Shown here one piece after another: positions 1 through 26,855 of a stretch of 64,000 nt of DNA; positions within the stretch are counted from its first letter, which is position 1; each line of letters starts with the position of its first letter. Location: the NCBI GenBank assembly GCA_030704615.1, contig CM060734.1, positions 2,356,001 to 2,420,000 on the forward strand. Reading direction: 5' to 3'. Both the position numbers and the translations under genes were made by a program. The notes beneath the pieces were generated by a model. It was not told the origin of the DNA, searched no databases, and was given only the letters and a program-made list of their open reading frames with translations. The DNA is from Takakia lepidozioides. Its lineage: Eukaryota > Plantae > Bryophyta.

Positions 1-512
1 CTCCAAGACACCACATTTCGTTCAGCCATTAGGTCAAACACTCCTTTTGCATCCTCAATGCACCCACATTTAGCATACATGTCCACCAGGGTAGATTTTC
101 AGAATGACATCTGGTAAAATTCCAGCTTTGATAATGTCCCCATGGACTTCCTTGCCCTTATCCAGCGCTGCCAGACTCGCACACACCTTGCCAAACAAAA
201 ACCTGGGGTGATCTGGTCGGGTTTCACCTCTTCCCTCATCATTTGCTCATAGGTCTCCAAAGCCTCCATCCCGCGCCCCTGTTGTGCATAAGCTGTGATC
301 ATCGCAGTCCAAGACACCATATCTCGTTCGGCCATATTGTCCAACACTCCTTTTTGCATCCTCGATGCTCCCCACATTTTGCATACATGTTCATCAGAGC
401 AGTGTCCAGAACAACATCTGGTATGATTCCAAGCTTCGACAATGTCAACATGGACCTCTTTGCCTTTTTGCAGCAAGGTTTGCCAGGATCACACACGCAT
501 TGCAAACACACA
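1..512 (-). pseudogene. PLS-class PPR gene fragment (runs off the window edge), frameshifted
   Basis: PPR motifs DMVSWTAMITAYAQQGRGMEALETYEQM and PDVVLDTALMNMYAKCG are spread over different frames. Confidence 0.85.
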
Positions 513-996
513 GTACATGAAGGAAGGAAGAAGAAGGAGATGGAGGTCGCGTTCGCCTAGCAGGGTGACTTGGAAATCTTGCTAAGTCCTCGGCCCCCTC
601 ACTGCGACTTACGGAGCTCACAACCCGAGCTCCCTATCAATTGTCCCGTTCGCAATTCGACGCATGTCATTGTAATTTCAAAATAGTGCCATATTGGTTA
701 CAATTTGATAAAAATGTCCCCGGGGGGTCCAACCAGCAGTCGTCAACACGACTGCAAATTTCATTAATATAAAAAATATGTTTTTTTTCAATTTTTGGAA
801 ATCAGCCTATAAATCGGCGTGAAACCCCGAGTTCACTTCTGCCACTTGTATACTCCATCTTTTATGCCAGCGTGGCATAAAAACGACTACGACGACTGGC
901 AAGTCGTCATTCACAACCTGGAGTCCCACGAGCAGTCGTTTCGGACAGAATCGCAACCGCGAGTCGGGTGCGAAAAAACACCTATTCCTTGTAGTG
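513..996. mobile_element. Orphan CACTA terminus (reverse complement CACTACAAGGAATAGG, ending at 996) inserted in a PPR E+ domain
   Basis: GTAGTG at 991-996 interrupts the PPR at ...SGKMK; (G)TCG/CGAC-rich subterminal motifs lie inside; no partner terminus seen. Confidence 0.65.
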
Positions 997-1579
997 TTTC
1001 ATCTTCCCAGACAATCTTCTCAACTCAGCATGGATTTCCGTAATTCTGGGATGCAACTTGTCATCTACAACGAAGGTGTGCACCTTGTTGCCAACCTCAA
1101 TGCAGCAGCGACCTGGCTCGTTTCCAACCCCTTTGACCTTCATCATTCTTCTCACTTTTGCAGTATCATCCCACCTGCCAGCTACAGCATAGATGTTTGA
1201 GAGCAACACATAAGTCCCAGCATCCTGTTCAGCCCACATGAGGATAGATGTTGTTGCACGTTCAGCCATCTCCACATTGCCATGGATTCTGCAAGCACCA
1301 AGCAAGGCCTTCCACACCACAACACCTGGATTTATGGGCATTTTATTAATCAGGTCCACTGCCTCATCCGGTTGTCCCGCACGTCCAAGAAGGTCCACCA
1401 TGCAGCCAAAGTGCTTTACTGTCGGAGTGACACCATGATCTTGACTCAGGGAATCAAAGTAGCGTCTTCCTTCATTCAGTAGGCCAGCGTGGCTGCATGT
1501 AGAGAGAACACTTATAAAGGTGATGTTGCATGGCTTCAAGCTGTTCTTTTGCATTCCTTCAAATAGTTGCACGACCTCC
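997..1579 (-). pseudogene. PPR S2/E/E+ region, 3' part of the gene split by the CACTA at 1580
   Basis: TFISVLSTCSHAGLLNEG, HFGCMVDLLGRAG, WKALLGACRIHGN, YVLLSNIYA, EPGRCCIEV. Confidence 0.9.
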
Positions 1580-2099
1580 CACTACTGCAAAAAGGGGGGG
1601 GTTTACGACGCCCACGGCCCGGCGCACGCGGCACCGTGCGACCCCACTTATTAGCGACGCCAAGAGGGTCGCTATTCAGGGGTCGGTATTATACCGACCC
1701 CTGAGGGGGCGCTATACTGAAATCCCAGCAAAATGAGGATCCCAAAATGACTAAGTCATTGGGACAGACCCCCCTGGCGTCGCTAATACCGCGGGGTTGA
1801 TTTCCCGTCGGTTTCTTCCTGCGACGCCCCTGCCGACGGTCCCCATCCGACGCCTCTGGGGTCGGATTAGGGTTTTTTCCCCCCAAACGACCTACGGGCC
1901 AACCAAATATATTTTTAACACTGTCTACCGTCGTCCTGGGCGTCGCTTTAAACGGGGAATTTGATTATTAAAGTTCTGATTTTGATTTTTAATTATTTAA
2001 TTGCAATTTAAAGTCTGATTTTGAGCAGGAAACCCGCCCTGAATGGACGGTATCCTACCGACTTCTCTACAGTCGCATTAACAAATAACTAAACAGCTG

Positions 2100-4900
2100 A
2101 CTACGACCCCTAAGCAGTCGCTACGCGCACCCCAATATATATTTGGGAGCTCGAACCGACACCCAGGGAGTCGCTGGTAGCACCCCACACAAACATGAAA
2201 AAAAAAAAAACAGAAAAAAAAACACACACACAACAACAGTCTCCCTAGGGGGCGCTGTTAAACAGCGTTGGGTAATTAGCGTAGGAACATGTACCGACCC
2301 CCAGGGAGGCACTGATAGCACCCCAAAAATATTTTGTAAAAATACTCACAGCGACCCCCCATGGGTCGCTGTTAAGCAGCGTCGGATTATTGTTAGGAAG
2401 TTGAAGCGACCCCCAGTAAGGCGCTGATAGCACCCCCAAAAATATGGACAAAAATGTCTAACAACGACGGCCTAGGGGTCGCTGTCAACAGCGTCGGGTT
2501 ATTGTTTAGGGACTTCAAGTGACCTCAGGGAAGGCGCTGATAATAGTAGCGACCCCCGGGGAGTCACTAATAGAACAATTTTTTATTAAATCGAATTTTA
2601 ATGAATTTTAAATAAGTATTATGATTTAAAATATCTAGGATTGCGGATTTGAGGGGAGTAATGATTTTATTTTTGGCTCTATTTTGTTCTTTGAATTCAG
2701 ACTTTGGACTACTACATCCATGCAAAAGATTGGACCAAAACAAAATAATAAAATAAAATAAAATAAAACAATAAAAAACAATAAAAAAACAATAAAAAAA
2801 ATCCTTGGGTCACTATTGCAGAACTCTCTATGAAGAGTGCATGAGGTTGAAGAGAACTTAATCTTGGAGTGCAAATGAGGGAAGAAAATATGGTTTTGGG
2901 TCTAGATGATTTTTTTTTGCTGCGCTGTCATTAAGCATATGGCTGGAGAATGGAACTTAAAAAAAATTATGTGCAGGCGAAACACAATTTTCCGTCTGTA
3001 CGACACGTAGTTGTGTTCATCACTTGAATGAGTATGCTTGCTTGCTTCCTACCAACCCTGAATGCAATGACGGGTACCTTAATTGATCTGAATGGAAACC
3101 CCTACCTTGAGCTTTATGCCTGATTTGTGGAGGGCTATCCCCCCCCCCCAAACAATCCCTGAAAATAGCAATAGCACCTTCATGCCATCTGCGTTGGATT
3201 GCCATAGCACTGAGAAGTGAAATGCAATTGTGTATACAGAGAAGCTGTTCCCCAACGCTGCAAACCGTGCACTAGAATTGAAGTTTGCCTGCGTGTGATC
3301 CCTATCAAATCCCAAACATGTCTGATCATAGTGACAGATTAAAATGATACAATATTGGTTCAATGGACGACTTCTGATGGACAATAGGTGTCGGCTCTTG
3401 CTACCACAAATATAGGAATAAACTGCTTTATACACATACAGTGGGTATCTGAAAATTTGGATGGCCTAACATGTACCTCAATCTCGTTCTTTGAAATGGG
3501 TGTAGGAATCTTGGGAGTTGTTCACACCAAATTCCACCTTCTGCACCACTTCATGACCCAGAAGTGAGGGCACGCACATTGTAGACGTTGTCATTAAGCA
3601 TATGGCTTGAGAATGGAATTAAAAAAAAATCATGTGCAGTCGATTGGATCCGACACCCTACACGTCGTTGCCAAACACCGTCGGGTTATCTTGAAACCCA
3701 AATAAAACTGGCAGCGACCGCCCGGGCGTCGATGGCACTACCCCAAGAAACATGGCGAAAGAAAAAACACCTATGATCCCCTCGTGGTCGCTGTTAAACA
3801 CCCCCAGTAAAATATTTGGGAACTACAACCGATGCCCAGGGAGTCGCTGGTAGCACCCCACACAAATATGGAAAAAAAAAACAAAAAAAAAACAAAACAA
3901 CAACAACCAAAGGGACGTTGTTAAATAGCGTTGGGTTAGCGTAGGGACATGTACCGACCCCCAGGGAGGCGCCAATAGCACCCCAAAAATATTTTACAAA
4001 AAAACTCACACCGACCCCCCATGGGTCGCTGTTAATCAGCGTCGGGTTATTGTTTAGGGACTTGAAGCGACCCCCAGGAAGGCGCTGATAGCACCCCAAA
4101 AAATACTTGCAAGAAAATCTGACAACGACCCCTAGGGGGTCGCAGGTAACCGGCGTCGGGTTATTTAATTATATGGACTTGTAGCAAACCCCCTGAAGGC
4201 GCTGATCGCACCCCAAAAATATTTTGCAAAAATACTCACAGCGACCCCCCATGGGTCGTTGTTAAGTAGCGTCGGGTTATTATTAGGAAGTTGAAGCGAC
4301 TCCCATGAAGGCGCTGATAGCACCCCCCAAAATATGGACAAAAAACTCTGACAGCGACGGCCTAGGGGTGGCTGTTAACAGCGTCGGGTTATTGTTTAGG
4401 GACTTGAAGCGACCTCAGGGAAGGCGCTGATAGTAGTAGCGACCCCCAGGGAGTCACTAATAGAACGATTAAATAAAATTTTAATGAATTTTAAATAAGT
4501 ATTATGATTTAGAATATCTAGGATTGCGGATTTGAGGGGCATAATGATTTTATTTTTGGCTCTATTTTGTTCTTTGAATTCATACTTTGGACTACTACAT
4601 CCATGCAAAAGATTGGACCAAAACAAAAATGGAAAAAAAAAGTTTTCTTGGGTCACTATTGTAGAACTCTCTATAAAGAGTGCATGAGGTTGAAAAGAAC
4701 TTAATTTTGGAGTGCAAATGAGGGAAGAAAATATGGTTTTGGGTCCAGATGATTTTTTTTTGCTGTGAAATTTTGCACGCACATTGCACACGCTGTCATT
4801 AAGCATATGGCTAGAGAATGGAACAAAAAAAAAAATCATGTGCAGGCGAAACACAGTTTTCCGTCTGTACGACACGTAGTTACGTTCATCACTTGAATGA
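2100..4900. repeat. Direct duplication of a roughly 0.9-1.1 kb subterminal block (about 2100-3029 and about 3760-4900)
   Basis: Both copies share near-identical sequence, e.g. ACATGTACCGACCCCCAGGGAGGC, GGATTGCGGATTTGAGGGG and CCGTCTGTACGACACGTAGTT. Confidence 0.9.
3079..3566 (-). pseudogene. DRM-type (domains-rearranged) cytosine DNA methyltransferase fragment inside the CACTA, two exons
   Basis: Exon 3566-3477 HFWVMKWCRRWNLV*TTPKIPTPISKNEIE; GT-AG intron 3476-3322; exon 3321-3079 TCLGFDRDHTQANFNSSARFAALGNSFSVYTIAFHFSVL...GMKVLLLFSGIVWGGGIALHKSGIKLKVGVSIQIN. Matches the DRM pattern WNLVW...GF..xHT...LGNSF(Q)VxT(V)A(Y)H.SVL...VLSLFxGIGGxxVALH. Confidence 0.85.
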
Positions 4901-4999
4901 CCCATTGAATGAACTTGGTTCAAGCTCATCTTTGGTCCACATGTGCTTAAGTATTGTCAAATCACCAATGTAAAGTCGCAAAAGATGAGCATCAAGAAG

Positions 5000-5250
5000 A
5001 AATATTCACATCAATCGGTTAATCAAATGTATCCAAAGTGCATCATGAGAATATCTACAATGCCCTTCTACGCGATCCCAGTCTCAAAGCAACCCTAGTT
5101 CTGTCACACACATCCCTACTCATGTTGTATCTGGAGGTCCCAAGCATCTTGCGAGAACTCGTAGGATGCAAATAGCTCGGTGCCAGCCCTAATAGTCGTA
5201 CTAGCACATGTCATCACAAACATGTGCATCCCCTCACAGTATGGGGATAA
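5000..5250 (-). pseudogene. C-terminal SET-domain fragment (type B) plus 3' flank, downstream of the transposase
   Basis: YCEGMHMFVMTCASTTIRAGTELFASYEF; DNA closely matches 26358-26600. Confidence 0.75.
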
Positions 5251-5460
5251 ATGGAGGCCGGTGAAATTGGAGTGCAAGTACTTCAAAACCATATTGACTA
5301 ACCAAAAAGACATCTATCACTATGATATACAACAATTTGCAACTGTTCTTGTCATATTGGCAAATTGTTGTACATCATGGTGGGAGACGTCCTCTTGGTT
5401 GGTCAATTTGGTTCAAAAGTAGTTGCCCTGTTCGCCTTGTAACAATGTGCCGCGTGGGTA

Positions 5461-8400
5461 CTACATCATGTCATCGGGAGGGACATCATCTTCCTCATCA
5501 AGCTCCAACTCCTGTCTATTGTCCTCATCGAAGTCACTATATTGACCCCTCTCAAGAGAGTCATGATCAAAAGCCGAATCATCATCCATATATTCATATG
5601 GCTCTTGCACGACCGGAGGGTCAATAGGAAGCGGCACAATAGGATCTTCCTCTTTTTGTACATCCTCATTGTCATTGTCATCGTCATCCTCGTCTTCCTC
5701 CTCCTCCTCCTCCTCCTCCTCCCGCGCAATATTTGCATCATGATCTCCTCCAACATTGTTCAAGGCAGTGTCTTCAATTGCCTCTATCCACGAAGCATCA
5801 TCTCCCGCATCCGCCTCGGCCATCTTGTCCACCTTGGTCGCTTCAACCACTTCGGCCTCATCACCACCCCAACGGTTTGATCCCTTGCCATGGTAAATGC
5901 GTCTCTCTCTTGGCCTAGCTTGCACAACCACCTTCCAATTGCCCGATCTAGTCTTGTCTTCGGAAAAAAAAAACTTGTTCTATGTCCTTCGGCCATGCAA
6001 ATGGTTCATTGGAGATGCGTGTAGAGGGCGTGATCCTGGAAGTGTTGACCCGCATGAAGCCACACTCGTCAGGCAAGAGGGTTGCATTTGGGCCTACAAT
6101 GTGGGGTTGGAACCACCTCCCCTTGAAAAGAATAGGGCGATGGTGATCATACTCGAGTTGCAAAATGGCATCAAGCTCCCCAATATATTCAAGCTTGCTT
6201 CTCTCGGGTCGAATGTCCCTTGTGCTTGACACGGAGTCTTGCCAATATGTTGCACACAAACCGGAGTCAAATGTGGTCTTCCGACGCATGTCAAGAGAAC
6301 GGATGCGGAAATGACAACCATGAATCCAAATTGAGGAGAATGAAATGGCATATTGAGATGGCCCACTCGCAAGCTCTTGCACTAAAGGCGGCACCACCTC
6401 GCCCGCGGCCATCGCAGCCTTAACTCCACTCCGGAGCCAATGGCAAAATGGTCTCAATGGTTGCATCTCCGTGGGCAAATCACGCGCCCCCGATGGGGCC
6501 GGGCTCCTGGATCCGCGCCGTCCTCGTGAGGCTCGCAATTCCCTCGTACGTGTGCGTCTCCAAATTGTACTTGCTTCCAACCGCCGTGCATTCTCATCCG
6601 CATGTCTTGCCTCCCACTCCACTATGCAAGGGGTGTTCTTCAATACAAAGTCATGAGCTTGCTCCACCTCGGTGTTCGATAGTTTCACCCTCCTTGATTT
6701 TTTGGGCAAAACCATGTCCTTGTTCCGCACATCATCATCTTCCTTCCACATTGGAGGGGCCTCTTTGTCCACCCTTCTCATGTACTCCGTACATAACACC
6801 ATAGCCTCTTGCAATGTGTACCCCTCCGCCATGCTACCCTTGGGATGTGCCTTTTGCCGCACGTGTGCCTTGACCTCCTTCATGTAATGCTCTAGAAAGT
6901 ACATCCACCGAGCATGGACCAGTCTGGCAATCTCCGCCTCTTCCACCAAGTGCACTACCAAATGCACTTGGATGTCAAAGAAATTAGGGGAAGATGCATC
7001 TCCAACATACACAAGACTGTGGCCGCCTCCTCCTTCATTCGTGGAAAATCCGCCTCGCCCATCTCTTTTGTGCAAAGCCAACGAAATAAATCAGCAAGTC
7101 GATAGACGGCTTTTCGAATGCCCTCATGGAGTGTCCCTCGTATTGCAATGGGAAGGATGTCTTGCAAAATGTTGTGGTAGTCATGAGACTTCAAACCATG
7201 AATAGTGGTGGCATCCTCAAATTTGTTGCGTAGAGATGCGCCATACCCGGTCGGGGTCCGGATAGCTTGTATTGTGGTCCGCACTTGCTTGTATTCCTCC
7301 TTTGTCCTAGTCCAAGTTGGCATCCTATACTTCCACTTGGGAGCATTGTTCACGTCCACACCATCAGCTTCAGGCCATAGTTGTGGCATACGGTTTTGGG
7401 CTTGGAGTTCTCGCCTCACACCAAGGGAATCACCGCCGCGTTTCTTCTTCCCCCCGGTTAAGTTTGCCATTACACGAATAAGTGATGAGCACACATTCTT
7501 CTCAATATGCATGGGATCAAGGAGGTGCCGGATTTTCAGATCCTGCGTATCATGAAATTTCCATATAATTTGTCATAAACCCTGAACTCGGTGCAATTTC
7601 ATATGAATATGTCATGACATTCAATGAAATATGTATGGTCCAATGCATTTTGGACTTGTACCTCCCAATAAGGCAACTCGTAGAAGATTGAGAGCCGGGA
7701 CATGCCACACCTCTTGAGCCGACGTTTTTTATCCAGCACCTCTTGCCACCGGGCTTTCCAAAATGACCCAGGGGGACGCACGGGTGGAGGTCTCCTCTCC
7801 ACGGTCCCATCAAATAATTTTTTGCCTCTCGTTCTCCATGGATGGTTGAGAGGAAGAAATTTCCGGTAGTTGGGATAGATCATTTTCACGACGTTCTTCG
7901 AATGCTTTGCATCAAGGTTATCCGGCCCACAACATGAACATGCTGCGTACCCCTTTGTGCTTAGTCCCGAACAAACTGAAAGCCTTGCACAAAACCATGA
8001 ATTTAGTTGGGATTTAACATTCGTCGCCTCGTATAATTTCAATGAACCGAGCAAAAACATGAATTGCTAAAGAAAAATCATGACGAGCACATACAAAACA
8101 TGATATACGATAGAATATATATGTTATAGGTAATATCAAATTAAAATGTACATGGATAGTCATGCATTGTCCATAGCAAAAGCCCTCGCAAGAGAAAAGA
8201 ACGTTGGCCAGTGGGTGCCGATGCGTCATAAGCTGGAACTCCATTCCATAATATATTGAGTTCGTCAACCAATGGACGCAGATACACATCCATATTCGCA
8301 ACTTGTTTTTTCCCCACAACACAAATTATTTGCAATATATATAAGATCGTTTCAAATTCAAACAGAACAAATGATATTCTTAGTTCCATATATACTCGAC

Positions 8401-9703
8401 ATTGTACTACCACGTACATCCTAAAGCAACAAAAAAGAGTTGTGTTATTCACTTGGCACAATGGCAGCCAACATGATATGACCCTTCTTGATAGCAAGAT
8501 AAGGAGGGATGTTGTAGTTAACCAGAGTCACAGGCCATGTTGAATGGCTACTTGACTGGACTGAATGTGGGTTTACACCATCCGCGGAGAAGCCGAGCCG
8601 AACATGTCTTGGATCGTCCTTCAAAAAAGGCCATTGTTCCTCGGTGTGTTTCCATGCCGGCGAATCGTGAGGGCCGCACATCTTTCCGGGAGGGCTCCAA
8701 TGCTCCGCATGCCACTTCATGAGTTGGGCAAATGATGGACTCCGAAATTGTGCTTTAAAGCGCGGGATGACTGGAAAATAATGCATTTTCTAACCTCCCC
8801 CACAAACACAACAAATATATCAATATTTACTTTCTGTCATTTGGATCCACATATTGTACGTAAGAGAGGGGTATATATTTGCAAAGGTTTGTATGTAGAT
8901 ATTTTGTAAAGTCTACATTAGTTGAAGGATTCATATAACCTATATGCATACCCTAATAATATCGGAATGATACAACCTCTTAAACCCTACACCCTAAAAT
9001 GATATATTAGTTGGTGGACACATGTATATATGTATATAAATATAAATGGCAGGAAAGAGAATATAAGAGAAATGTACCTTTCGTGGGATCTTCTTTCCTT
9101 GAACATCATCTCGGTATCTAGATTTTTTGCACTTGGGACACGTGGTAGCACGCGCATGCTCTCCATAGTACAAGGTGCGATCACAAGGACATGCATGGAT
9201 AATTTTGTAGCCCATTCCACTGTGTCTAGAACCTGTCTTGCCTCTTTTCGAGAACGTGGCATTTTATGCTCCAAATGGGGGGCGAGGATGTGGTCCGCAA
9301 TTGTGCGCATGATTGCGGACATGCCAATGTTGCTTATGTTGAACCGAGATTGCAAATTAAGCAACAACGGTATATTAGTGGAAAGTCGACTCACTTTTGC
9401 TCCTTTATACAAGGGTGTTTTTGCCTCGGCTTCCATTGGATTTGGGTCGACATCTTCATCCAATGTGGCCGGGCGAGCCATATCCTCCCCAATTTGTTGT
9501 CCCTCCCCCAAGTGGTTCATTAACAAATCCTCCATGGCTCTCACATCGTCGTCCATATTGTGTTCATTTTCCACCTCGTCACCGTCTTGGGCAATATGGT
9601 CGTCTGGGCCTTGTTCTCCGCGGCCAATACCAGTGTTGTTGTCCACCTCGGCCTACGTGCCCCTTGGAGTGTTCGCTGACCTCATTTGCTCTTGTACTTG
9701 GAT
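5461..9703 (-). pseudogene. CACTA TnpD/Tnp2-type transposase (Transposase_21, DUF4218 and DUF4216-like regions, acidic tail), multi-exon, with frameshifts and stops
   Basis: IHACPCD...CPKC; HYFPVIPRF...DSPAWKH...VRLGFSADGVNP...WPVTLVNYNIPP; DPMHIEKNV; GLKSHDYH; VHLVVHL...WMYFLEHYMK...GSMAEGY; NEPFAWPKDIEQVFF. Exons approximately 9703-9078, 8793-8453, 8318-8148, 7978-7662, 7548-5461. Confidence 0.93.
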
Positions 9704-9879
9704 CTATAAATACATTCACAATTCATTTAATATACAATGGTTGGGAATTGCTCCATTTGCATCCAAAAAATATATGTACATTGGCACATTCAGCCTAAAA
9801 CCTAAACCCTAATCACCAATCCCTACCGGTGCCAGAATAGGGGCCACGATATGTGTACATGACTAATCACCATCCCCTA

Positions 9880-10880
9880 CTACAAGTTTCCTTGGCGGCC
9901 GCGGAAGTGACGTTTGTAACGTTTGTCAAACTCGCTCCACTCCCGATGGACTCTCTCATCCCAAGCCTTATCAGAGAACTCATAAGAGGCGAACAACTTT
10001 GAACCGGCGGGAATCGTAGTACATGCACATGTCATAACAAAATTTGATATCGATTGTGCTAGCCTAACATCCCCGTCATGTCACTCATCCCACAATACAT
10101 TGGTCATTTTAGGGTTACCAATTGAACTATTGATGAACCCTGCAACATTCCCGAACACATCGGGATCTCCGTCACATATGACCCTTGTTCCAGGGTCCAA
10201 CACCCGATTGAAGACATCGAGGTCATTGACACAAAGACCATAAGGTCTCACCCAAGGGGCTACCCATCGCATTTGCGTCCAGTGGAACCACATGTAGTAT
10301 GGGCCAAAGTAGGGAAATAAGTCCACTGTCTGCCCTCTCCCTGGAGGAACCACAATATCCTCCATTGCAAATAGCCCATGACCCATGGAAGGGTTGGTGG
10401 CGGCTTTGACACAATATCGCTAACCCCAAAACTGAAATGGTTGGCTTTGAGGAATGGGGACCGGAGGCACTAGTGCACGCCAGAGGCTAGGCCTGAATGG
10501 TGTCTGCAACATCGTCCTATACACCTTGTCAGTAACCCTAGGATCATCGGGCCGTCGTACCTCAAGTACCGGTGGTGGCCTATACTTCCTAGGGGTCCGG
10601 GTGGGACGCCGTGAGACACCTATGGGGGCCTGGGATTGGGAAGGGGCAGCTGTCCGAATATGTTGGCGTGATTGGTGATGTGAACTAGGAGGTGGAGTGA
10701 TATGTGACTGATTGGGTGAGCAGCTAGAGGTGATTGTGCACGGGGTGGACTCGAAAGGAGATGTGACTCGTGGGCTGCTGTACTAGTGCAAACTGGATGT
10801 GATAGAGGTGATCCATGGACCGGTGCAGTACTAGTGCAAAGTGGAGGTGGTAGAGGTGACTCATAGATCGGTGGAGTGCA
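9880..10880 (-). pseudogene. Pro-rich linker plus SET-domain exon (type A) of the CACTA
   Basis: One frame with stops: RYCVKAATNPSMGHGLFAMEDIVV...PYFGP...GNVAGFINSS...NVLWDE*...VMTCACTTIPAGSKLFASYEF, i.e. SET motifs GxGLFA, (RF)INHS-like and ELxxxY-like. Confidence 0.75.
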
Positions 10881-11980
10881 GCCCACATGGGTTTATTTAT
10901 TTATTTATTTAGGGTGATGCATGCACCCTCTCTCTCTCCCTCACCACCTCTGTGCAGCAATTCGCAGCAACGGGGGGGGGGGGCAATTCGCAGCCACCCC
11001 AGCCCACATGGGCTGCGAATTGCTGCACAGAGGTGGTGAGAGAGAGAGAGGGTGCCTGCATCACCCTAAATAAATAAGCCACCCCAGCCCACATAGCATT
11101 TTTGTTTTCCGATTTTGGGTAATGCAGGTACCCTCTCTCTCTCCCTCACCATCTCTGCGCGGCCAGCCCCCTGTTGCTACGAATTGCTACACAGAGGTGG
11201 TGAGGGAGAGAGAGAGGGTGCCTGCATTACCCAAAATAAATAAATAAATGCCCATGTGGGCTGCGGTGCTTGCACGCACCAGCGCGGCCAGCCCCCCGTT
11301 GCTGGTCAAGGAGAGAGAGAGAGGGTGTCTGCATCAGCCAAAAAAAAAAAAAAAAAAACCCATGTGGGCTGGGGTGCCTGCGCGCACCAGCGCGGCCAGC
11401 CCCCCGTTGCTGTGAATTGCTTGACAGACAAGAGGGTGATAGAGAGAGGGTGCCTACCATCACCTAAATTTGAAAAAAAAAAAAAAAAACCCAAAGTGGG
11501 TTGGGGTGCCTGCGCGCACCAGCGCGGCCAGCCCCCCGTTGCTGTGAATTGCTTGACAGACAAGAGGGTGATAGAGAGAGGGTGCCTGCCATCACCTAAA
11601 TTTGAAAAAAAAAAAAAAAACCCAAAGTGGGCTGGGGTGCCTGCGCGCACCAATGCGGCCAGCCCCCCCTTGCTGCGAATTGCTTGACAGAGAGCATGCG
11701 TGATAGAAAGGGTGCTTGCCATCACCCAAATTTGAAAAACAAAAAGACCGAGTGGGCTGGTATGGCTGTTTGCACCAATGTGGCCAGCCCCCCGTTGTTG
11801 CGAATTGCTTGGCAGAGAGCATGCGTGATAGAGAGGGTGCCTGCCATCACCCAAATTTAAAAAAAAGTAAAGCCCAAGTGGGCTAGTGTGGCTGCGCGCA
11901 CCAATGCAGCCAGCTCCCCGTTGCTGCGAATTGCTTGACAGAGAGGTAGTGTGAGAGAATGAGAGGGTGCCATTACCCAA
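10881..11980. repeat. Roughly 120-bp tandem repeat array in mixed orientation
   Basis: Unit GGGTGCCTGCGCGCACCAGCGCGGCCAGCCCCCCGTTGCTGCGAATTGCTTGACAG...GAGAGAGGGTGCCTGC...poly(A); the reverse complement array is at 14057-14530. Confidence 0.9.
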
Positions 11981-12574
11981 ATTCGAAAACCTAACCAAGC
12001 TCGGGTGGGGTGGATGTAGGGTGCTTGCCGGGGAAGGACAGCCGGGGGTGAGCGAGCCAAGCTCGGGTGACCTACCCTGCAGCACATACACACACGAGCG
12101 AGTTAAACAGACCAACAGAGGTGGGGGAGCTGGAATCGGCGAGCTCGCCTTGTGAGGAAAAGGAAGACAGAGGGGAGGGTTTGAAGGTGCAAGGAAAGCA
12201 AGGTAAACGAAAGAGAAGGGATCCCTAGCTCACCTCCGGAAGACGCACAGCCGAGGGCGAGCAGCTCAACGTCGGAGCTTGGGAAATTCACAGCCGCAGC
12301 AAAAAGCAAGTGGCGCACGAAGCGCGCCTTCCTCCGAGCTCCCCCACGACAAGGTGACCTCCGCATCTCTCACCCTCTTGCTCAAATTCTACCTTGCAAG
12401 CTGAGTGAAGATGAGAGGGAGAGGGAGCTGGGCCGTGAGAGAGAGAAGGAGGTCGCTTGACGATTTTGAATTTTTTTTAATTAACGACGGTAATCAAACA
12501 AATCGAAATTAATAAAAGGTTAATCCCGTCGCTGTGTAGCTGCGACCCCCTGGGTGTCATTTTTAGTGCAGCTG

Positions 12575-13000
12575 CATGCACCCATTTCCCGTCGCTTTCT
12601 ATTAGCGACCCCCTGGAGGTCGCTTCTGGGGACTTAGAAGTTTTAGAGCCGGATATTGCTAGCTGGTAGTGCGGGCACCCATTTCCCGTCGCTTTCTAGA
12701 AGCGACCCCTGGAGGTCGCTTCTGGGGACTTGGTAGTTTTAGAGCCCGGATCGGGCCTAGTGTGGGCACCCATTTCCCGTCCTTGTCTATATGCGACCCC
12801 CTAGAGGTCGCTTCTGGGGCCTTAGTAGTTTTAGAGCCGGATGCTAGCTAGTGTGGGCACCCATTTCCAATCCCTTTCTATATGCGACCCCCTGGAGGTC
12901 GCTTTCTGGGACTTGGTGGTTTTAGTACTGCCGGATGTTGTGGGCACCCATTTCCCATCGTACCTGCGACCCCAGGTGGTCGCTTCCTGGGGGTTGGAGC
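12575..13000. repeat. Roughly 92-bp tandem repeats (about 5) carrying the GCGACCCC..GGAGGTCGC quasi-palindrome
   Basis: CCCATTTCC recurs at about 12580, 12678, 12768, 12860 and 12947. Confidence 0.85.
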
Positions 13001-13094
13001 TTTTTTGAAAGCATGATGTCATGTTTCATAGAATTCATATATCAATTGGATGTGCAATTTCAATAGTGAGGTTTTTGGATTTTTTTTATAGGTG

Positions 13095-14056
13095 ATGGTA
13101 CGCTCACGGGCTCGGCCAATCACGGAGGATGATTATCAAAATGTAGTTCCACCCGACGAGAACACCTCCAACAATGATGTCCGCATGCTTGATATACTTC
13201 CACCTCTTTCAAGACGCCGTCGACGTAGGGATGAGCAGTTGGCGGATGTACGTGGAGAGCCTCACGTGATTCATGCACAAGCCCTCAAGCATCCCGTTCC
13301 TCGTCCCAACTTGCCACCTCGAGGTCCTAGGCCTCTTAGTCCAGAGCCACGAGGCCCTGATCGAGCCACTTTGGACAACCCCCCTCGGTTGGAGTGTTGG
13401 TGCGAGCGGTGTTGGGCACGAGTGGCACCTGGAGGTGTTCCCGTGATGCGGCAGGATCATATTGTGGATGAACACTATCAGAAATGGGGGATTGCCGATG
13501 TGGCAAGGGTGAGCCTTCTATAACCCATTGTTGTAACATTTTTTGTGCTAATATATAAGGACGTACGTTTGTTGTAAGTACTCGGATGTTTAAAAATGAC
13601 TTGTAATTGATACTGTAATGGAAGTTACTGTGGTTAAATATATGAATAAACAACAAACTAATTGTATGAATTATATATTATGTGCAGCCACGAGTCATTG
13701 CCCTCCAAGCGCGCAAAAACAGTACATCACAGGTACGTGATGAGTTGGAGATGGACCATCCATTGTCGGATGTCACTTTGTTTTTCCCTCAGGTTGACAT
13801 AGATTGGGTCCGTGAGACGAGGGGCTTACCCTACGCCCTTCGATTGTTTGGTTGCCGACCGCGCAGCCGGCCACCGCTTGCACCGGCGCCTCGTCATGAT
13901 GTCGATATTCCACGTCCATCACCAATACGCTCTAGTTGTACTAGTCCAGCTCCACCTCCTCCACCTTCTGATCCTCATCCATCTGTATCTCCTCCTCGTC
14001 CAATTTCCACTAGTACACCGGCCCATGTAGAGTCACCTGCACCACCTCCACTTTGC
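13095..14056 (+). pseudogene. First exon (CxCxxC...H motif resembling the CACTA transposase-associated domain) and start of the Pro-rich/SET exon, now inverted
   Basis: ATG 13095; exon to 13508 (ECWCERCW...DHIVDEHYQKWG); GT-AG intron 13509-13687; exon 2 is homologous to 25443-25700. Confidence 0.7.
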
Positions 14057-14530
14057 GCAGCAAGGGGGGGCTTGGCCGCACTGGTGCACGCAGGCACCCC
14101 AGCTCACATGGGTTTTTTTTTTAGTTTTGATCGGTGATGCATGCACCCTCTCTCTCTCCCTCACCATCTCTGTCAAGCAATTCGCAGCAACGCGGGGCTG
14201 GCCGCGCTGGTGCGCGCAGGCACCCCAACCCACATGGGCTTTTTTTTTTAGTTATTTTCGGTGATGCAGGCACCCTCTCTCTCTCCCTCACCATCTCTGT
14301 CAAGCAATTCGCAGCAACGGGGGGCTGGCCGCGCTGGTGCGCGCAGGCACCCCGGCCCACATGGGTTTTTTTTTTAGTTATTTTTGGTGATGCAGGCACC
14401 CTCTCTCTCTCCCTCACCATCTCTGTCAAGCAATTCCCAGCAATGGGGGGCTGGCCGCGCTGATGCGCGAAGGCACCCCAGCCCACATGGGTTTTTTTAT
14501 TTTTATTTTGGGTAATGCAGGCACCCTCTC
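14057..14530. repeat. Roughly 120-bp tandem repeat array (about 4 units), inverted relative to 11230-11980
   Basis: Repeated CACCCTCTCTCTCTCCCTCACCATCTCTGTCAAGCAATTCGCAGCAACGGGGGGCTGGCCGCGCTGG. Confidence 0.9.
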
Positions 14531-14990
14531 CATCTGTCTCTCTCACGACCTACCTGATCACATTTGTAGGAACGGGGAGCTGGCCGCGGTGGTGCGCGCA
14601 ACGACTGACCTCCGTGTCTCACCCCCTCGCCCCACGGACGTTGGCTGCTTCTCTCTGGTCGCTGGCAGCTACCGTCCTCTTGCTCGGGTCTGGTACTCCC
14701 TGCCTCTGCCTCTGTGTTTTGTGATTCAGGGCTCGTGAGAGAAGACTCGTCACTAACGGCTACATTATTGTGTTTTCCTACTTTTTGTATTTCTACTTGT
14801 ATGTCCCATGGTCTGTATTTGGTGTAGCTTTTTAATTATTTATTGGTTTATTTGATGTTGATATATTGTAGTGTCTTTTCCAGTGTATAATTCTTTTTTG
14901 CTCTATAAAAATCTATGTAATACTCTACAGTCTTCATTATGCTTTTTAGGATATTTTCTTTGAATTCATATGTTGTAGTTCATTTCAGAC

Positions 14991-17015
14991 ATGGCCAAGG
15001 ATTCGGAGAAGACCCCTGCTGCAAAGAAAAGGAAAAAACCAGAAGCAAACCCGTAAAGAAATCTGGTTTGACCCCCTGGCCTTCCCCTCCTCCTGTGCTT
15101 GCTCCTTCATTTCATGAGCCAGAGAGTACCAGTGGTACCCCCCGAGCACTGTGTTGAAGATGATGCCCCCCTCTTGGGCCAAGGTGTTGTAGTTGAAGTG
15201 GCTCTTGTGCCGGATACTACTGGTACTATTGATGAGTCCACCACTGGGCCTGCAGTATCTAGCGCTACCCTCTCTCCTTCTTAGAAGCATTGTATACGGG
15301 TAATATAAAGATTTTTCAAGATGGTCCTAGGATGGGCCAATTGGACATTGCTCCCAGTGCTTCTCCAACCACCGAGGTTAGGAGGGTTATGACACATCAA
15401 CAAGATTTGCTGATCAATGCACAAGAGAGAGAGAGAGGGGTCCCATACGTGGGGAGGTAGCTAGGCCGCTTGACCCAAATGATGCTCCCGTTGAAAGATT
15501 GGGGAGTTCTTCATGGCATGATGCATCTCATGGTACCCAAGGTGCCTCTCCCGCTCATGTCCATGATACCTCCATTGGTGGCCAGTCCTCGGCCAGGAAG
15601 GGCCTCGCATTTGGCCAGCTCACTGCTGTGACTCTAGCTAGTGGCAGTTGGGGTCAAGCCTCTCCTGAAGAGCAAGCACAACTCATGGCATCTTTGGCGG
15701 CAATGGGCTTCCATTGCCATCAATGGGACAACTTTTGGCACCTGAACTCGAGGTGCCTGAGATGCCCGCGCTCAGGCCCAGGGATACAATCGCCTCGGAG
15801 CATCATGAGGCCAGTATCTCTCTCACCATTTTGTTGTATTGCCTACTGTATTCTTTTTGTTTTTGTGTTTTTATTTGGTTTGTGTACATGACTTGCAGAG
15901 ATTGGCCAAGGGCCTCACAAAACCATTGTAATTGCAGGCTCCATTTGTGGACCCGGTGCCATGCGCCCTTGAGAGACCTCTGGTCATTGCCGAGGGAGCC
16001 GTAGAGAGACGTAGAGAGAGAGAGATGGAGGAGGTTGAGGCTGTTGTGGGGAGAGGGAAAACAAAGATAGTGGAAAAGCCCCTTAGCAAGAAGAAGAAGA
16101 AGCCTTGCATTGAGGATACCCCTCTCATAGTCGGAGAGTTGGGGGAGGGTAGTGGGAAGGGAGATATTGGAGAGGCTTCAATAGAAGGAGAGCCTCGTAG
16201 CGCGGGAAGAGAGGGAAGAAGGGAGGGCTGGAGGTGCCTAAGAAGGTCCCACCTCTAGAGGCCAACAAGTATGGGTATCCAATTGGAGAGTTTTGGGAAG
16301 CGTTGAGGAGGCATGCCTTTCCAAAAGCGGCCCGATGGTTCTCTTTGCATGTAGATTGGGATCAACAACCATGGGAGCACCGTAGGGGATTTGTAGCCAA
16401 ATTGGAGAAGAAGTTTGGGGGTGGTTGGAGTGAGTCCCGCTTGATGGGGTTGATCGGAAAGAACCTCAAGGATAGGCAATATCGTGCAAGGAAGGAGATC
16501 CGGCCACGTTATGCAAAGAGAAAGGGCTAGATACCTGCACCCACAAGTTTGGTCCGGGAGGGCACAAGTCATTCGCGACCCGATTTGTAAGCATTTCATG
16601 GATGCATTCACTTTAATGTGTTGCTTTGTCTACATATGGCTCTCTCTTTGGTATATCTTGCATAAACTAATTAAGGTTGTTTGTGATTGTGTAGCATCGT
16701 AGGTTTGGGAGACACCCAAGCGTGGAGGAGGTAGAATTTGTCAAGAATGAAGGATACCCCACGCTTCTTGAGCGCATCAAGACCCATAGGGCCCTCTCCG
16801 CGAAGAGTACAAAAAAGCGAAGTATTACTAGTAGCACTACTAACCATAGGGTGACCGATGTCGAGGATGAGGGCCAGACTAGTGAGGATGAGGATGATGA
16901 TGAGGGCAAGCGACATGAGGATGAGGGCGAGGGCGAGAGTGATCGGGGTGATGATGATGGCTCGCAGGATGATATGTTGACCCTCGAGGACCTCGAAGTC
17001 CATGAGGGTATCTAG
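14991..17015 (+). pseudogene. CACTA second gene (TnpA/ORF2-like), multi-exon, degenerate
   Basis: ATG follows an acceptor; EFWEALRRHAFPKAARWFSLHVDW...LIGKNLKDRQYRARK; acidic C-terminus; a homolog is present in the CACTA at 59097+. Confidence 0.65.
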
Positions 17016-17499
17016 TACTATAGAAGATGCATATTATATAATGCTTGTACATGATAGGAGCCTTGTTATGTTTTATTGATTATTTCTAGCAGCAGTTGTT
17101 TGTCGTCTAATTTGCGATGTCTCTCGCGAGCTTGGCTTTGTTGTGGACATATAGGTTACACCTACAAAGAGGCTCTAGGAAGGTTCTCGGCCCCAAGAAA
17201 GGTACTACAATTTACAAGGCAACCGGCCAATGTGCGGGGGTAATATAAAGCAAATAAATAAAACAAGATGAAAACATCATTTGAGGGGCGACCCCCTGGG
17301 GGTCGCTTTAGGATTCACCCAGGCATGCCCCTTCCCGTCGCCTGGAAACACCGACCCCCCGTGGGTCGCTTTAGGGTGTGTCCTGCGCGTCGCTCATAAG
17401 CACCGACCCCCTGGGGGTCGGTTTAGGATTAACACAAGCAAATCTGTCCACCGACCCCCTGGTGGTCGCTTTCTCCTCCCCAATAACTGCCCGTGAACC

Positions 17500-18080
17500 G
17501 ACTCCATAGGGGTCGCTACTAGCAAAACCCCGGCCCATCCATACCGTCGCTACGTAACTTCGACCCCCTGGGGGTCGCACAGTGGGGATACCAGGACCCC
17601 CGCCATACCCGTCGCTACGTAACTCCGACCCCCCGGGGTCGCACAGTGGTGATACCACGACCCCCGCCATACCCGTCGCTACGTAACTCCGACCCCCTGG
17701 GGTCGCACAGTCACGATACAACGGCCCCCGCCATACCCGTCGCTATGTAACTCCGACCCCTTGGGGGTCGCACAGTGGCGATACCACGGCCCCCGCCATA
17801 CCCGTCGCTACGTATTACCAACCTCCGAGGGGTCGCATAGTGGCGATACCCGCTACCCCCGCCATACGCGTCGCTAGGTACCTACGACGGCTTTGGGGTC
17901 GCATAGTGGCGATACCTATGCCTACCCGCCAGACCCGTCGCTACGTAAATATGACGTCTGGGGGGTCGCCTCACCTCCCGCCGCCGATAGCTTACTCCGA
18001 CCCCCTTGGGGTCGCAGCATGGCTATACCCCCGGAACCACCATATCCGTCGCTAGGTAAGTCCGACCCCCGTGGGGTCGG
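17500..18080. repeat. Roughly 64-bp subterminal tandem repeats of the CACTA right arm
   Basis: CCATACCCGTCGCTACGTAACTCCGACCCCCTGGGGGTCGCACAGTG repeated about 7-8 times. Confidence 0.9.
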
Positions 18081-18382
18081 TCAGTATTCCGAACCTTTTA
18101 ACTGTTTTCTTTTTATTAAAAAAAATGTAACAGTGCGACCCCTTGGGGTTGCACGGGCAAAGCTCCACAGCGTCGGACAAGGGGTCGGTTAGAGGGGCCT
18201 GGTGTCGAGGCAATTCGGCGACCCCCTGGGGGTCGGTCTTAACTGCCCGATTTACCAACGCCTTTTTAGCGACGCCTCAAGGGTCGGTATTTGGGACTTG
18301 GCCGCAACGGCTTTAGACCCCCTTAACAACCTCAGGGAGGTCGGTCGGGTGTCGATAACCCCCCCCCCCAATTGCTGTAGTG

Positions 18383-19705
18383 TCCCTATGACAACCATCG
18401 CATTCCACGACACCACATCTCGTTCAGCCATATTGTCGAACACTCCCTTTGCATCCTCCATGCATCCACATTTGGCATACATGTCCACCAGGGCAGTGTT
18501 CAGGATCACATCTGGTACAATTCCAGCTCTGATGATGTCGCCATGCACTCTTCGCCCTTTTCCAGGGCTGCCAGGCTTGCACACGCACTGCAAACGCACA
18601 CCAACATGATGTGGTCGGGCTTCACCCCGTCGCACATCATTTGCTCGTAGGTCTCCAAAGCCTCCATCCCATGTCCCTGATGTGCATACCCTGCAAGCAT
18701 CGCACTCCACAACAGCACATCTCGTTCAACCATAGTGTTGAACACTCCCTTTGCATCCTCGATGCACCCACATTTTGCAAACATGTCCACCAGGGTCTTG
18801 TTTAGAATGACATCTGGTACAATTCCAGCTCTGAAGATGTTGCCATGCACCTCTTTCTCCTTTTCCAGAGCTGCCAGGGCAGTGTTCAGATTGACATTTG
18901 GTACCATTCCAGCTTTGATGATATCCCCATGCACCTCTTTGCCTTTCTCCAGGGCTGCCAGGCTTGCACAAGCATTGCAAATGCACACATTAAACATGAT
19001 GTGCTTCCCCCATCATTTGCTCATAGGTCTCCAAAGCCTCCATCCCATGTCCCTGATGTGCATACCCTGCAAGCATCGCACTCAACGACACCACATCTCG
19101 TTCAGCCATAGTGTCAAACACTCCCTTTGCATCCTGGATGCACCCACATTTTGCAAACATGTCCACCAGGGTATTGTTCAGAATGACATCTGGTACAATT
19201 CCAGCTCTAAAGATGTCGCCATGCACCTCTTTCCCCTTCTCCAGAGCTACCAGGGCAGTGTTCAGATTGACATTTGGTACCATTCCAGCTTTGATGATAT
19301 CCCCATGCACCTCTTTGCCCTTCTCCAGGGCTGCCAGGCTTGCACAAGCATTGCAAATGCACGCAAACATGATGTGCTTCCCCCATCATTTGCTCATAGG
19401 TCTCCAAAGCCTTCATCCCACGTCCCTGCTATGCATACCCTGCAAGCATCGCACTCCACGACACCACATCTCGTTCAGCCATAGTGTCGAACACTCCCTT
19501 TGCATCCTAGATGCACCCACATTTTGCAAACATGTCCACCAGGGTATTGTTCAGAATAACATCTGGTACAATTCCAGCTCTGAAGATGTCGCCATGGACC
19601 TCTTTCCCCTTTTCCAGAGCTGCCAGGGCAGTGTTCAGATTGACATTTGGTATAATTCCAGCTTTGATGATATCCCCATGCACCTCTTTGCCCTTCTCCA
19701 GGGCT
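18383..19705 (-). pseudogene. 5' part of the PLS PPR gene interrupted by the CACTA; roughly 373-bp unit tandemly repeated about 3 times
   Basis: P-L-S motifs ([36 protein letters not shown]); TCATTTGCTC[A/G]TAGGTCTCCAAAGCC at about 18637, 19013 and 19385. Confidence 0.9.
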
Positions 19706-19960
19706 TCCTTCTAGTGTCATCAGAGGCGGTCAAACTCCCCCCTTTACTCTTTACCAACTCCAGTCAAGGCACTTGACGGCTGACTTTCCACCTATGCTGG
19801 GTAGATCCACAATCGGCTCTTCGTAGTTTGATATGCAAAGAAGGAACTACCCTCAAGAGTACATCATATCCAATATTCTCTGGAAATGGTGGATGAACCA
19901 AGCAGCTATGCATATCCATGAATGAAGCAAGACATCGCACCTATACAGAAAAAGATCAGG

Positions 19961-20860: not shown

Positions 20861-22370
20861 GAGAGAGAGAAGACTCCGACCAAAGCTGGCGTAACTAAGA
20901 GCCACTTCACCTTGCGGCTACTGCCCCTGTCGGGGGTGGCCCTATAATAAACACAGGTGTCCGGTTGGACACCTAGCTGTAACCAAGGGTATATGTGCCA
21001 TGGTGCCAGATAAAAAAAGGGGGGGTTACCCCGGGGGGGGGGGGGGGGGCGACGGGGTATCTAGGACAGTGTTGTGGGATCGGATTCTAGTTTTCGTTTA
21101 TTGGTGATAATAGCTGTAAGAGAACGAAGGGCTATGAGGTGGATGGCTTGGAAACATTTGTGGATAAGGGAAATAGGGATTTGAAAGTTGTTATGCAGGT
21201 CATTGATGCTGGCATTGTGTATGCCACCTCTAGTACCTGCCGTGATAACGGTTAGAGGGCCGGTGCAACCATCCTCGTCGGCAAATAACGAAGATGAGTG
21301 GAGCATATTTTTGTCGTTTTTCCAGGATAGAGTCATGTGGGTAGCAGTCATGACAGAATGTGAATTCGATGAAGTGAATAGTGAGTGATGGGGATGATGT
21401 GATAGGATGTGGGGCATTCATGGGTAGACCCTGCACTATTAGAATGTCTGGGCAGAGTCTAGCTGGACAGGTCATGGTCGGGAAAGATATGAGCATGGGA
21501 GTAGCCACGGTGGGACAGTGTGATTGGGTGGGTGGCCTTGGTATGTGCCTGTGTTAAGGAGTGTGAACCATCTGGTTTCGGCACGGCTGCGCAGTACTTT
21601 GTGGATATGTCAGACGACTTGGTTATGGCGAGTGATATGGAGGCTGTATATAATGGGATGCATGCATTGGCTGAGTAAGTGTGGCCAGGTGTCACGTTCC
21701 CGATGAGTGTGTGAGCAGAGTGGACAAAATGGGGATGGGAAGAGGCGTGGCCAAAAAATGTGTTTGCGTTGGTGGCCTGCATATTGGGCATATCTGAATT
21801 GAAGGGTTTGGCGGATTTGTGCATCTGTGGTGGTTTTGGTATTCAAAAAATGGTTTGATAGTTTATGGTGTAGCACCGTGGATTGTGTCCACTTCTGAAT
21901 GTGGACCTTAGTATGGCTAATTGATGCAGCAACTTGCTTGTTGGCTTCCTGGGAGAGGGTGGCTAGGAGGTTGCGGACATGTTTAGGTGCGGGTGGGTCT
22001 GGGACGGGGTGTATGAACAAAAATGGGTGAGTATGGGCGATGTGAATAGGGTCATCAGAGGCGATTACACGGGGCTTGGAGGCGCCTGCCTGGGCAAGTA
22101 AGTCGGCAGCATCGTTGCCATGTATCCCAGTGTGCGAGCGGACTTTATGGAAGTGGATGGGGTGTGGTTTGGAGAGAGCTAGTTGAACAATGGCCGTGAT
22201 AAGGTTACAGTCAGGGTGGTGGTGGTGGGATGACGGGCGGGCGATGTGGTTCCTGATAAGGAAGAGTGAAGTAAGACTGTCAGTGAAAATATAGTAGGGG
22301 GGAGGGAAAGCGTCCATCCTTGAAATGGCCTCAGAGATTGCCATAAGTTCAGTACGTAATAATTGTGGCG
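20861..22370 (-). mobile_element. 5'-truncated non-LTR retrotransposon: RNase H, CCHC finger and restriction-like endonuclease (Dualen/RandI-like), with (TC)n tail
   Basis: ELMAI..YYIFTDSLTS..FHKVRSHTGIHGNDAADLLA (RNase H); CPLC...DTWPHLLSQC; RHNQVV; PDIL...FIEFTFCHD (PD-(D/E)xK-like). Confidence 0.8.
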
Positions 22371-23399: not shown

Positions 23400-23718
23400 G
23401 ATTCTGTGTTCTCTCTGCATGTAGCCATGTTGGCCTAGTGGATGAAGGAAAACACTAATTTGATTCACTGAGTCAAGATCATGGTGTCACTCCAACAGTA
23501 CAACACTTCGTCTGTAGGGTAGACCTTCTTGGTCGTGCGGGGCGATTGGATGAGGCATAGGACTTCATTGACAAAATGCCAATTAAACTAGATGTTGTTG
23601 TGTGGAGGACCTTGCTTGGTGCATGCAGGATTCATGGCAATGTGGAGATGGCTGAACGTGCGGCAACATCTATTCTCAAGTGGGATGAACAGGACGCTGC
23701 GACTTATGTGTTGCTATC

Positions 23719-23761
<43 letters not shown>

Positions 23762-26522: not shown

Positions 26523-26855
26523 GGGTCGCGTAGAGGGGCATTGTAGATATTCTCATGATGTACTTTGTATACATTCGATTAATCGATTGATGCAAATATT
26601 TTTTCTTGTTGCTTGTGCGGGTTGCGACTTTGCAGGGCAATGTTTCGGCAATGTTGCAGGGCTCATCAATAGTTCCATTGGTGACATGAATCATCGTCGT
26701 CATTGCTTGAGCATTCCATATTTACTTTCATTCTTAAAAATAAATGAAATCTTGGGCCTAACCTTTTAAATGGCTGAAAGAAAAGAACCAACACCACTAA
26801 CATGTAATTTGAATGAAACATTGTACGTACTCAAATATTGTTTTGGTCTTCTTAG

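Follow-up and report, generated by a model that had tools for sequence, protein, structure and literature searches.

A candidate SET-domain accessory gene of bryophyte CACTA transposons, traced from a decayed element of Takakia lepidozioides

Introduction

Do DNA transposons of plants carry enzymes of the class with which their hosts mark chromatin, or do they pick up short pieces of host genes that only resemble such a toolkit? The question is raised by a locus of the moss Takakia lepidozioides, contained in a window of 64,000 nucleotides (contig CM060734.1 of assembly GCA_030704615.1, positions 2,356,001 to 2,420,000 of the forward strand), which is the whole stretch of DNA analyzed here. 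The initial annotation of this window described positions 1580-18382 as one CACTA transposon holding a transposase, two SET-domain segments and a segment resembling the DRM class of DNA methyltransferases, and proposed that both SET and DRM are cargo by which the transposon family writes histone and DNA methylation to control or evade silencing. To our knowledge, VANC and TnpA, the proteins through which plant transposons are known to affect the epigenetic state of their copies, are not enzymes.

In this work we assess which of these segments belong to the transposon family, using related loci, profile and fold searches, and estimates of selection. The SET gene appears, from its position and its pattern of substitution, to be an old accessory gene under purifying selection in a bryophyte CACTA clade and not a recent capture, and the DRM segment is best read as a captured pseudo-fragment of a host-type gene. 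We regard the joint account, in which the anatomy given below is combined with a conserved SET gene and a captured DRM fragment, as highly probable.

Conservation of the SET gene beside the transposase

In every related locus with downstream DNA (7/7), the SET gene lies upstream of a collinear CACTA transposase. These loci come from Riccia sorocarpa (L001), Sphagnum jensenii (L006), S. magellanicum (L008), Calypogeia fissa (L007) and metagenome contigs (L002, L005 and L009), and in each of them SET and then the transposase are read from one strand, with both Transposase_21 and DUF4218 recognized in L002 and L005. The distance from the end of SET to the transposase is approximately 100-630 bp (<500 bp in most loci), and the transposases are 30-50% identical to that of the window. 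A profile search yielded 83 members of the SET family, and all those with a named source come from Sphagnum species, Calypogeia or Riccia. In Sphagnum the family has many copies, clusters at 90% identity containing up to 360 sequences, and a locus search with a second homologue alignment contributed only two short metagenome loci without flanks.

The window itself holds two copies of the SET-transposase unit, the one within 1580-18382 (copy 1) and a truncated one further along (copy 2), and their comparison by the Nei-Gojobori method provides an estimate of selection. The ratio of nonsynonymous to synonymous substitution rates (dN/dS) is 0.25 for the N-terminal part of SET (101 codons, with dS saturated at 1.5) and 0.32 for a displaced C-terminal SET fragment of copy 1 set against copy 2, while the transposase pieces mostly range from 0.17 to 0.42, two short pieces reaching 1.2 and 1.4. 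It is because SET occupies the same position in all seven loci and shows a dN/dS of about 0.25 that we read it as old and selected. The initial annotation had taken SET for a family feature and not a single capture on the strength of the two window copies; the related loci, the substitution pattern and the lack of any close host SET relative now extend that view. Between the two copies, SET dS (~1.5) far exceeds the values in the Transposase_21 pieces (0.04-0.5), which suggests that the copies carry SET modules of different sublineages.

A separate observation concerns the likeness of two of the related loci. Positions 8552-11007 of the S. jensenii locus and 8570-11087 of the C. fissa locus share 71% DNA identity over 2.5 kb of SET and transposase, and the corresponding SET proteins are 61% identical, a fairly high likeness for elements of a moss and a liverwort, and one for which horizontal transfer among bryophytes of peatland is conceivable.

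Identity of the SET domain

The SET open reading frames (ORFs) of the window, comprising a 101-residue ORF and further pieces searched singly, gave no Pfam match at E <=1 and no PDB sequence match, and the identity of the domain is therefore established through its homologues. A phmmer search against 1.84 billion representative sequences returned 39 relatives with 30-61% identity (mostly 35-45%). Most of them are 90-460 residues long and carry the domain at the C-terminus, and they have in common the motifs WGRRW, GLGLFA, LFPYxGPxY, IDGDP, NIAGYINSS and ELxxxY. The check proposed in the initial annotation, a match to the Pfam SET profile (PF00856), is thus negative for the window ORFs and positive for 19 of 24 members scanned in the homologue alignment, with a best E of 1.3e-8. 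When the family profile was searched against PDB, LegAS4 was the best match (E 2e-4), the INSS motif of the family aligning to INFS of LegAS4, and a language-model search found SET clusters in 27 of 30 matches.

Structure prediction points the same way. An AlphaFold2 model of homologue P0041:130-321 (61 sequences; the homologue and not the window copy) reached a pLDDT of 89.7 and a pTM of 0.84, and all 50 of its 50 best Foldseek matches in PDB are SET methyltransferases (SETD8, MLL1/3, DIM-5, G9a and LegAS4 among them), each at probability 1.00. Across the family, conservation is complete or at least 90% at GxG, YxG, the Asn of NHxC and the last Tyr of ELxxxY. Taken together, the Pfam matches, profile alignment and predicted fold of the homologues argue that the window segment is a real but very divergent SET domain.

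Anatomy of the element

Positions 1580-18382 constitute a single dead, rearranged autonomous CACTA (En/Spm-type) transposon inserted in a pentatricopeptide repeat (PPR) gene. The element ends in imperfect terminal inverted repeats (TIRs) and is flanked by a TCC target site duplication (TSD), and four features by which the CACTA superfamily is recognized are present: TIRs of CACTA type, a 3-bp duplication, Transposase_21 and DUF4218, and subterminal arrays. The coordinates of all features are collected in Table 1.

Table 1. Features of the CACTA element, its flanks and the related copy in the window
Feature	Position	Strand	Remarks
PPR gene, C-terminal part	982-1572	-	left flank; PLS-class, with PPR, E and E+ motifs
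TSD, TCC	1577-1579		identical TCC on the right at 18383-18385
Left TIR	1580-1615	+	CACTACTGCAA, then a G-run
Subterminal repeats, transposase 3' side	1620-4900		113-bp arrays at 2243-2542 and 3872-4433
DRM-like gene fragment	3082-3557	-	about 107 codons in two exons: exon A 3477-3557; GT..AG intron 3322-3476 (155 nt); exon B 3082-3321
Second SET fragment	4988-5313	-	C-terminal motif ...GTELFASYEF; copy-2 subtype; displaced downstream of the transposase
Decayed CACTA transposase	5948-9646	-	several ORF pieces; N-terminal region 8987-9646; Transposase_21 7599-8786; DUF4218 within 5948-7081
SET gene, exon 2, 3' part	9880-10870	-	proline-rich linker and SET domain (~10440-9961)
Tandem array expanded in SET linker	10879-12013	both	125-132-bp units; 10879-11157 opposite to 11157-12013
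91-bp repeats with the element's palindrome motif	12578-12925		inside the inverted segment; palindrome repeats at 12544-12900
SET gene, exon 1	13092-13507	+	CxCxxC...H motif, PPRLECWCERCW...HYQKWG; within ORF 13092-13523; GT donor at 13508
SET gene, exon 2, 5' part	13687-14056	+	AG acceptor at 13686; homologous to copy 2 25528-25617; continues into array
126-bp array	14056-14600		reverse complement of 11157-12013; end of inverted segment
Divergent ORF remnants	15499-17015	+	no Pfam match; candidate third gene; weak collinear similarity to divergent L002 ORFs
Subterminal repeats, 5' side	17290-18234		with palindrome GACCCCCWGGGGGTC; 64-bp array at 17539-17948
Right TIR	18348-18382	-	reverse complement CACTACAGCAA, then a G-run
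PPR repeats	18392-19708	-	right flank; orientation as in left flank
Copy 2	25239-29397	+	both ends truncated, all parts on +; exon-1 tail 25239-25304; exon-2 start 25528-25617
Copy 2, SET domain	25980-26522	+	stops at 26178 and 26316; directly upstream of transposase
Copy 2, transposase	27012-29397	+	

Most of what the initial annotation had read from the letters stands after this analysis, with revised limits where given: the single element with its TIRs and TCC duplication, the transposase (through its Pfam matches), the SET exon assigned to 9880-10880 (through the Pfam, profile and fold matches of its homologues), the second SET fragment assigned to 5000-5250, the presence of DRM-like sequence at 3079-3566, the related copy with SET just upstream of its transposase, and the decay of every copy in the window, which is evident in the stops of both SET domains and in the split transposase.

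Both subterminal regions contain tandem arrays, and arrays with units of 113, 91 and 64 bp were found. The palindrome GACCCCCWGGGGGTC, allowing at most one mismatch, occurs 12 times in the window against 0.01 expected, always within the element, and was not found in any of the nine related loci. The transposase 3' side contains an internal duplication (2243-3031 and 4130-4900, 83% alike). The 91-bp repeats that carry the palindrome in the interior of the element are likely to represent an internal promoter or binding region.

Transposase_21 was matched by minus-strand ORFs 8445-8786, 8141-8497 and 7599-8060 (E values of 1.4e-24, 1e-13 and 6.6e-12 across the pieces), and DUF4218 by minus-strand ORF 5948-7081 (E 1.3e-23); a Pfam scan of the window gave no match to Transposase_24 or Transpos_assoc. 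In copy 1 stops and frameshifts interrupt the gene. The CxCxxC motif of SET exon 1 is absent from the first ORF of the transposase, which is compatible with a first exon shared by the two genes. A third ORF, divergent from the SET-transposase unit, is present in L002 (1111-2379), L006 (3542-4126) and L007 (4912-5559), in each case on the minus strand and with no Pfam match. The candidate counterpart in the window, at 16234-17015 (+), is not significantly similar to the divergent ORFs of L002 (pairwise E 0.85, and one low-complexity match with E 0.001).

The model of the SET gene is taken from annotated proteins of Sphagnum jensenii and Calypogeia, which read ...PPRQLCxCTxCxGQ...QHIxRFGRH and then the SET domain; in the genes of these two genera an intron of about 90-110 nt separates the Cys/His exon from the SET exon. 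The exon-1 motif of the window matches protein P0013 weakly (E 0.047), its assignment drawing mainly on the pattern common to the Sphagnum and Calypogeia proteins. The SET frame of copy 1, ~10440-9961 (-), reads PFQFWG*RYCVK...GHGLFAMEDI...CDGDPDVFGNVAGFINSS...TNVLWDE*HDG...TTIPAGSKLFASYEF, where asterisks denote in-frame stops (TAG at 10420-10422 and TGA at 10081-10083, both on the minus strand), and the near-invariant Glu of ELxxxY is replaced by Lys in its GxEL motif. Both SET copies in the window are pseudogenes.

In copy 1, exon 1 and the start of exon 2 are read from the plus strand and SET and the transposase from the minus strand, whereas all parts of copy 2 are collinear. Because of this opposite orientation, and because the arrays on either side are mutually reverse-complementary in BLAST alignments, a segment of copy 1 (~12013-14600, ~2.6 kb) appears to have been inverted within the element, with a breakpoint inside the expanded linker array, which is absent from copy 2. 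With its identity threshold, the repeat search returned no inverted pairs of 200 bp or longer, and the inversion is read from BLAST.

The displaced SET fragment at 4988-5313 has 88% DNA identity to the SET C-terminus of copy 2. In contigs of DNA run X1 the summed depth on 4901-5300 is about 15 times that on 9700-10900, contig depth not being copy number; contigs of the same run jump from 5183 to 5882, and in run X7, guessed to be an RNA run, one contig links 10336 with 5242. The segment 4901-5300 may be common in non-autonomous or deletion derivatives.

Two further observations were made on the SET genes of the window. An extra, out-of-order piece from the middle of SET (GNVAGLINSS) is located in copy 2 past the SET C-terminus, at 26563-26685 (+), which indicates a local duplication. 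Both copies also carry TGA at the same SET codon, after W-D-E (10081-10083 on the minus strand and 26316-26318 on the plus strand), which could be due to CpG decay of a CGA codon in both copies in parallel, or to a stop that both inherited. A short intron was considered as the cause of the shared TGA and rejected, the sole GT..AG span there being about 21 nt.

The DRM segment

The ORF at 3079-3435 (-) matches the DRM2 chain 7l4h over residues 180-259 (E 2.5e-14). Its exon B contains the GNSF motif followed by motif I, and the occurrence of GNSF before motif I in one exon corresponds to the rearranged motif order typical of DRM; an insertion damages the glycine loop of motif I. Exon A reads RRWNLV*TTPKIPTPISKNEIE, with an in-frame TGA, and we take it, from the DRM2 sequence as known to us and not from an alignment, to be the DRM2 segment just before the exon B match. 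The catalytic domain of DRM alone comprises about 350 residues. The fragment spans only DRM2 residues ~155-259, without the Pro-Cys of motif IV and the other catalytic motifs.

No further DRM similarity was found in the window or the related loci, neither copy 2 nor any of the nine loci having the fragment. Two copies of the duplicated subterminal array flank the fragment, and its host-style intron argues that its source was a host gene. The segment is best understood as a captured genomic pseudo-fragment of a host-type gene, particular to this copy and unable to make an enzyme. The proposal that a DRM-type methyltransferase is cargo of the family is therefore not supported, given some 107 codons with a stop, no motif IV and no counterpart in copy 2 or the nine loci; what was found here corresponds to the recent, neutral host-gene capture that the initial annotation had named as the outcome contrary to its proposal. 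Short gene fragments captured in the subterminal regions of CACTA elements can mimic a toolkit, and DRM is not to be counted as cargo.

Insertion site

PPR motifs lie on both flanks in the same orientation, and the element accordingly interrupts a PPR gene of the PLS class. Excising the element together with one copy of the TSD did not yield a continuous PPR frame: the frames are off by one and about eight codons are seemingly missing. The flanking repeats are not a satellite, their motifs being PPR, E and E+. More pieces of PPR genes are found near the element, at window positions 1-520 and 23406-24899, which suggests that the PPR genes around it form a tandem cluster. Between the two CACTA copies there is a direct repeat of about 1 kb (20861-21915 and 23751-24787, 71% identity).

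Possible function and alternative explanations

In the account that we favor, the main transcription unit of the bryophyte CACTA elements consists of exon 1 with the CxCxxC...H motif, a short intron and an exon 2 in which a variable linker precedes the SET domain at the C-terminus, with the exons of the transposase beginning 100-500 bp past SET on the same strand. The SET protein would act as a lysine methyltransferase dependent on S-adenosylmethionine (SAM), its N-terminal Cys/His motif might bring it to the chromatin of the element or to transposase-bound ends, and there it might place on histones, or on a partner protein, a mark that favors expression or transposition. We put this enzymatic and chromatin role forward tentatively. 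The fuller proposal, that this moss and liverwort CACTA clade encodes an active lysine methyltransferase whose Cys/His exon is shared with the transposase by alternative splicing, and that the enzyme marks the element's own chromatin or a protein of silencing or transposition so that the element escapes silencing, seems to us doubtful as a whole. Should it nonetheless prove true, plants would have an epigenetic writer that a transposon encodes.

Several results weigh against the reading of SET as a conserved and functional gene of an element with the anatomy described above. The SET ORF of the window has no Pfam match of its own. The dN/dS values derive from 45-124 codons with saturated dS, in alignments picked by protein similarity. 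The TGA shared by the two copies could mean that their ancestor was already inactive, the part downstream of it nonetheless differing more at synonymous than at nonsynonymous sites (proportions pS 0.86 vs pN 0.31). Throughout the family, the His of NHxC is replaced by Ser, placing N-S in the SAM pocket, and the post-SET region is missing; activity is not assured. Sequencing runs guessed to be RNA gave only contigs 80-90% alike. The extra inverted array piece at 10879-11157 implies a rearrangement more complex than one inversion.

Among the alternatives, the one that survives best concerns the unit itself. The 16.8-kb unit could represent two or more family members, or a fused deletion derivative, so that its cargo mixes elements. 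The displaced fragment at 4988-5313 belongs to the subtype of copy 2 (dS ~0.5), as against a dS of ~1.5 between the SET of copy 1 proper and copy 2, and the palindrome repeats inside the element at 12544-12900, the inverted arrays, the skipping of 5183-5882 by X1 contigs and the X7 contig (kind guessed RNA) that joins 5242 to 10336 all fit such a composite. Against these stand one matching pair of TIRs with an identical 3-bp TSD, flanks that belong to one PPR gene and a single transposase, and an inversion that carried the promoter region along would explain the internal palindrome repeats. We consider a mixed unit a minority possibility.

A second alternative accepts that SET is conserved but takes it to be catalytically inactive, employed either in binding, for instance of histone tails or of a silencing factor of the host, or in regulating the transposase. 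The family-wide change of His to Ser in NHxC, the lack of a post-SET zinc cluster and the weak Pfam scores are what such a protein would present. Little or no variation is nevertheless seen in GxG, YxG, the Asn and the last Tyr of ELxxxY, LegAS4 has INFS at the aligned position and is an active enzyme, and minimal SET enzymes without a post-SET region exist. An inactive SET is, in our assessment, unlikely.

Far less probable is the explanation that SET and DRM segments are both recent, neutral captures of host genes, acquired by transduplication in the style of Pack-CACTA elements and devoid of any role. The DRM fragment fits this explanation fully, and all SET copies of the window contain stops. 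For SET, however, synteny already refutes it, the gene being in the same position in seven of seven moss and liverwort loci whose transposases are only 30-50% identical to that of the window; the dN/dS of ~0.25, the completeness of the SET domain and the lack of a close host relative add to this. That the DRM fragment, which lies in a repeat-rich subterminal region with duplicated arrays on either side, gives rise to anti-silencing small RNAs directed at the host gene for a de novo DNA methyltransferase is scarcely credible, even if the target would be the methyltransferase of RNA-directed DNA methylation, since the fragment is in one copy only and absent from relatives, and random capture of fragments is common in CACTA elements.

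We thus retain the reading of SET as a conserved accessory gene. Its maintenance under selection beside the transposase in mosses and liverworts, in many copies, points to the presence, in some plant DNA transposons, of an enzyme of the class with which the host marks chromatin.

Comparison with known systems

The initial annotation knew of no CACTA element with such cargo. SET genes are known in other transposons, Plavaka included, and the claim has to be qualified accordingly; for canonical land-plant CACTA elements, no description of SET genes was found in a limited literature search that did not include Repbase Reports. SET genes have been described in HarbingerS, Phytophthora MuDR and Helitron elements (Kojima and Jurka 2014, Repbase Reports, as cited in PMC12730594). 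As far as the citing source describes them, these are likewise DNA transposons with a putative SET histone lysine methyltransferase beside the transposase, but they differ in superfamily and in host (oomycetes and others), and the likeness is one of description and not of sequence. Closer in classification is Plavaka, of the EnSpm/CACTA superfamily, which in the red alga Bostrychia moritziana has a conserved accessory gene with a SET domain, PAG2 (bioRxiv 10.1101/2025.02.11.637652). PAG2 combines SET with an N6/N4 DNA methylase (PF01555) and accompanies another branch of transposases, in contrast to the small Cys/His exon, SET domain and land-plant Transposase_21 found here.

At the level of single proteins, plant DRM2 (PDB 7l4h, 4onj) resembles the window at 3082-3321, which aligns to its residues 180-259 with the same order of GNSF and motif I, but the fragment of ~107 codons has a stop in exon A, an insertion in motif I, and no PC motif, ENV motif or UBA domains. 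Legionella LegAS4/RomA (PDB 5czy, 8sr6) is the best profile match, with the whole SET core aligned and INFS facing INSS of the family, and is among the fold matches; it differs in being a bacterial secreted effector with ankyrin repeats, at 18-19% identity and E 2e-4. This is a resemblance of motif variants and not evidence of recent common origin.

VANDAL VANC and Spm TnpA share with our proposal the concept of a protein by which a transposon influences the epigenetic state of its copies. Neither of the two belongs to the SET class of enzymes, and the role of the bryophyte SET protein is a prediction. The most extensive likeness is to the En/Spm elements of flowering plants, with their transposase TnpD and their second product TnpA. 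CACTA termini, a 3-bp TSD, subterminal palindromic arrays and a transposase with Transposase_21 and DUF4218 are common to both, and in both more than one product apparently arises from one 5' region. The difference lies in the gene upstream of the transposase, which in En/Spm encodes TnpA, a DNA-binding protein (Transposase_24), and in the bryophyte elements encodes a SET protein.

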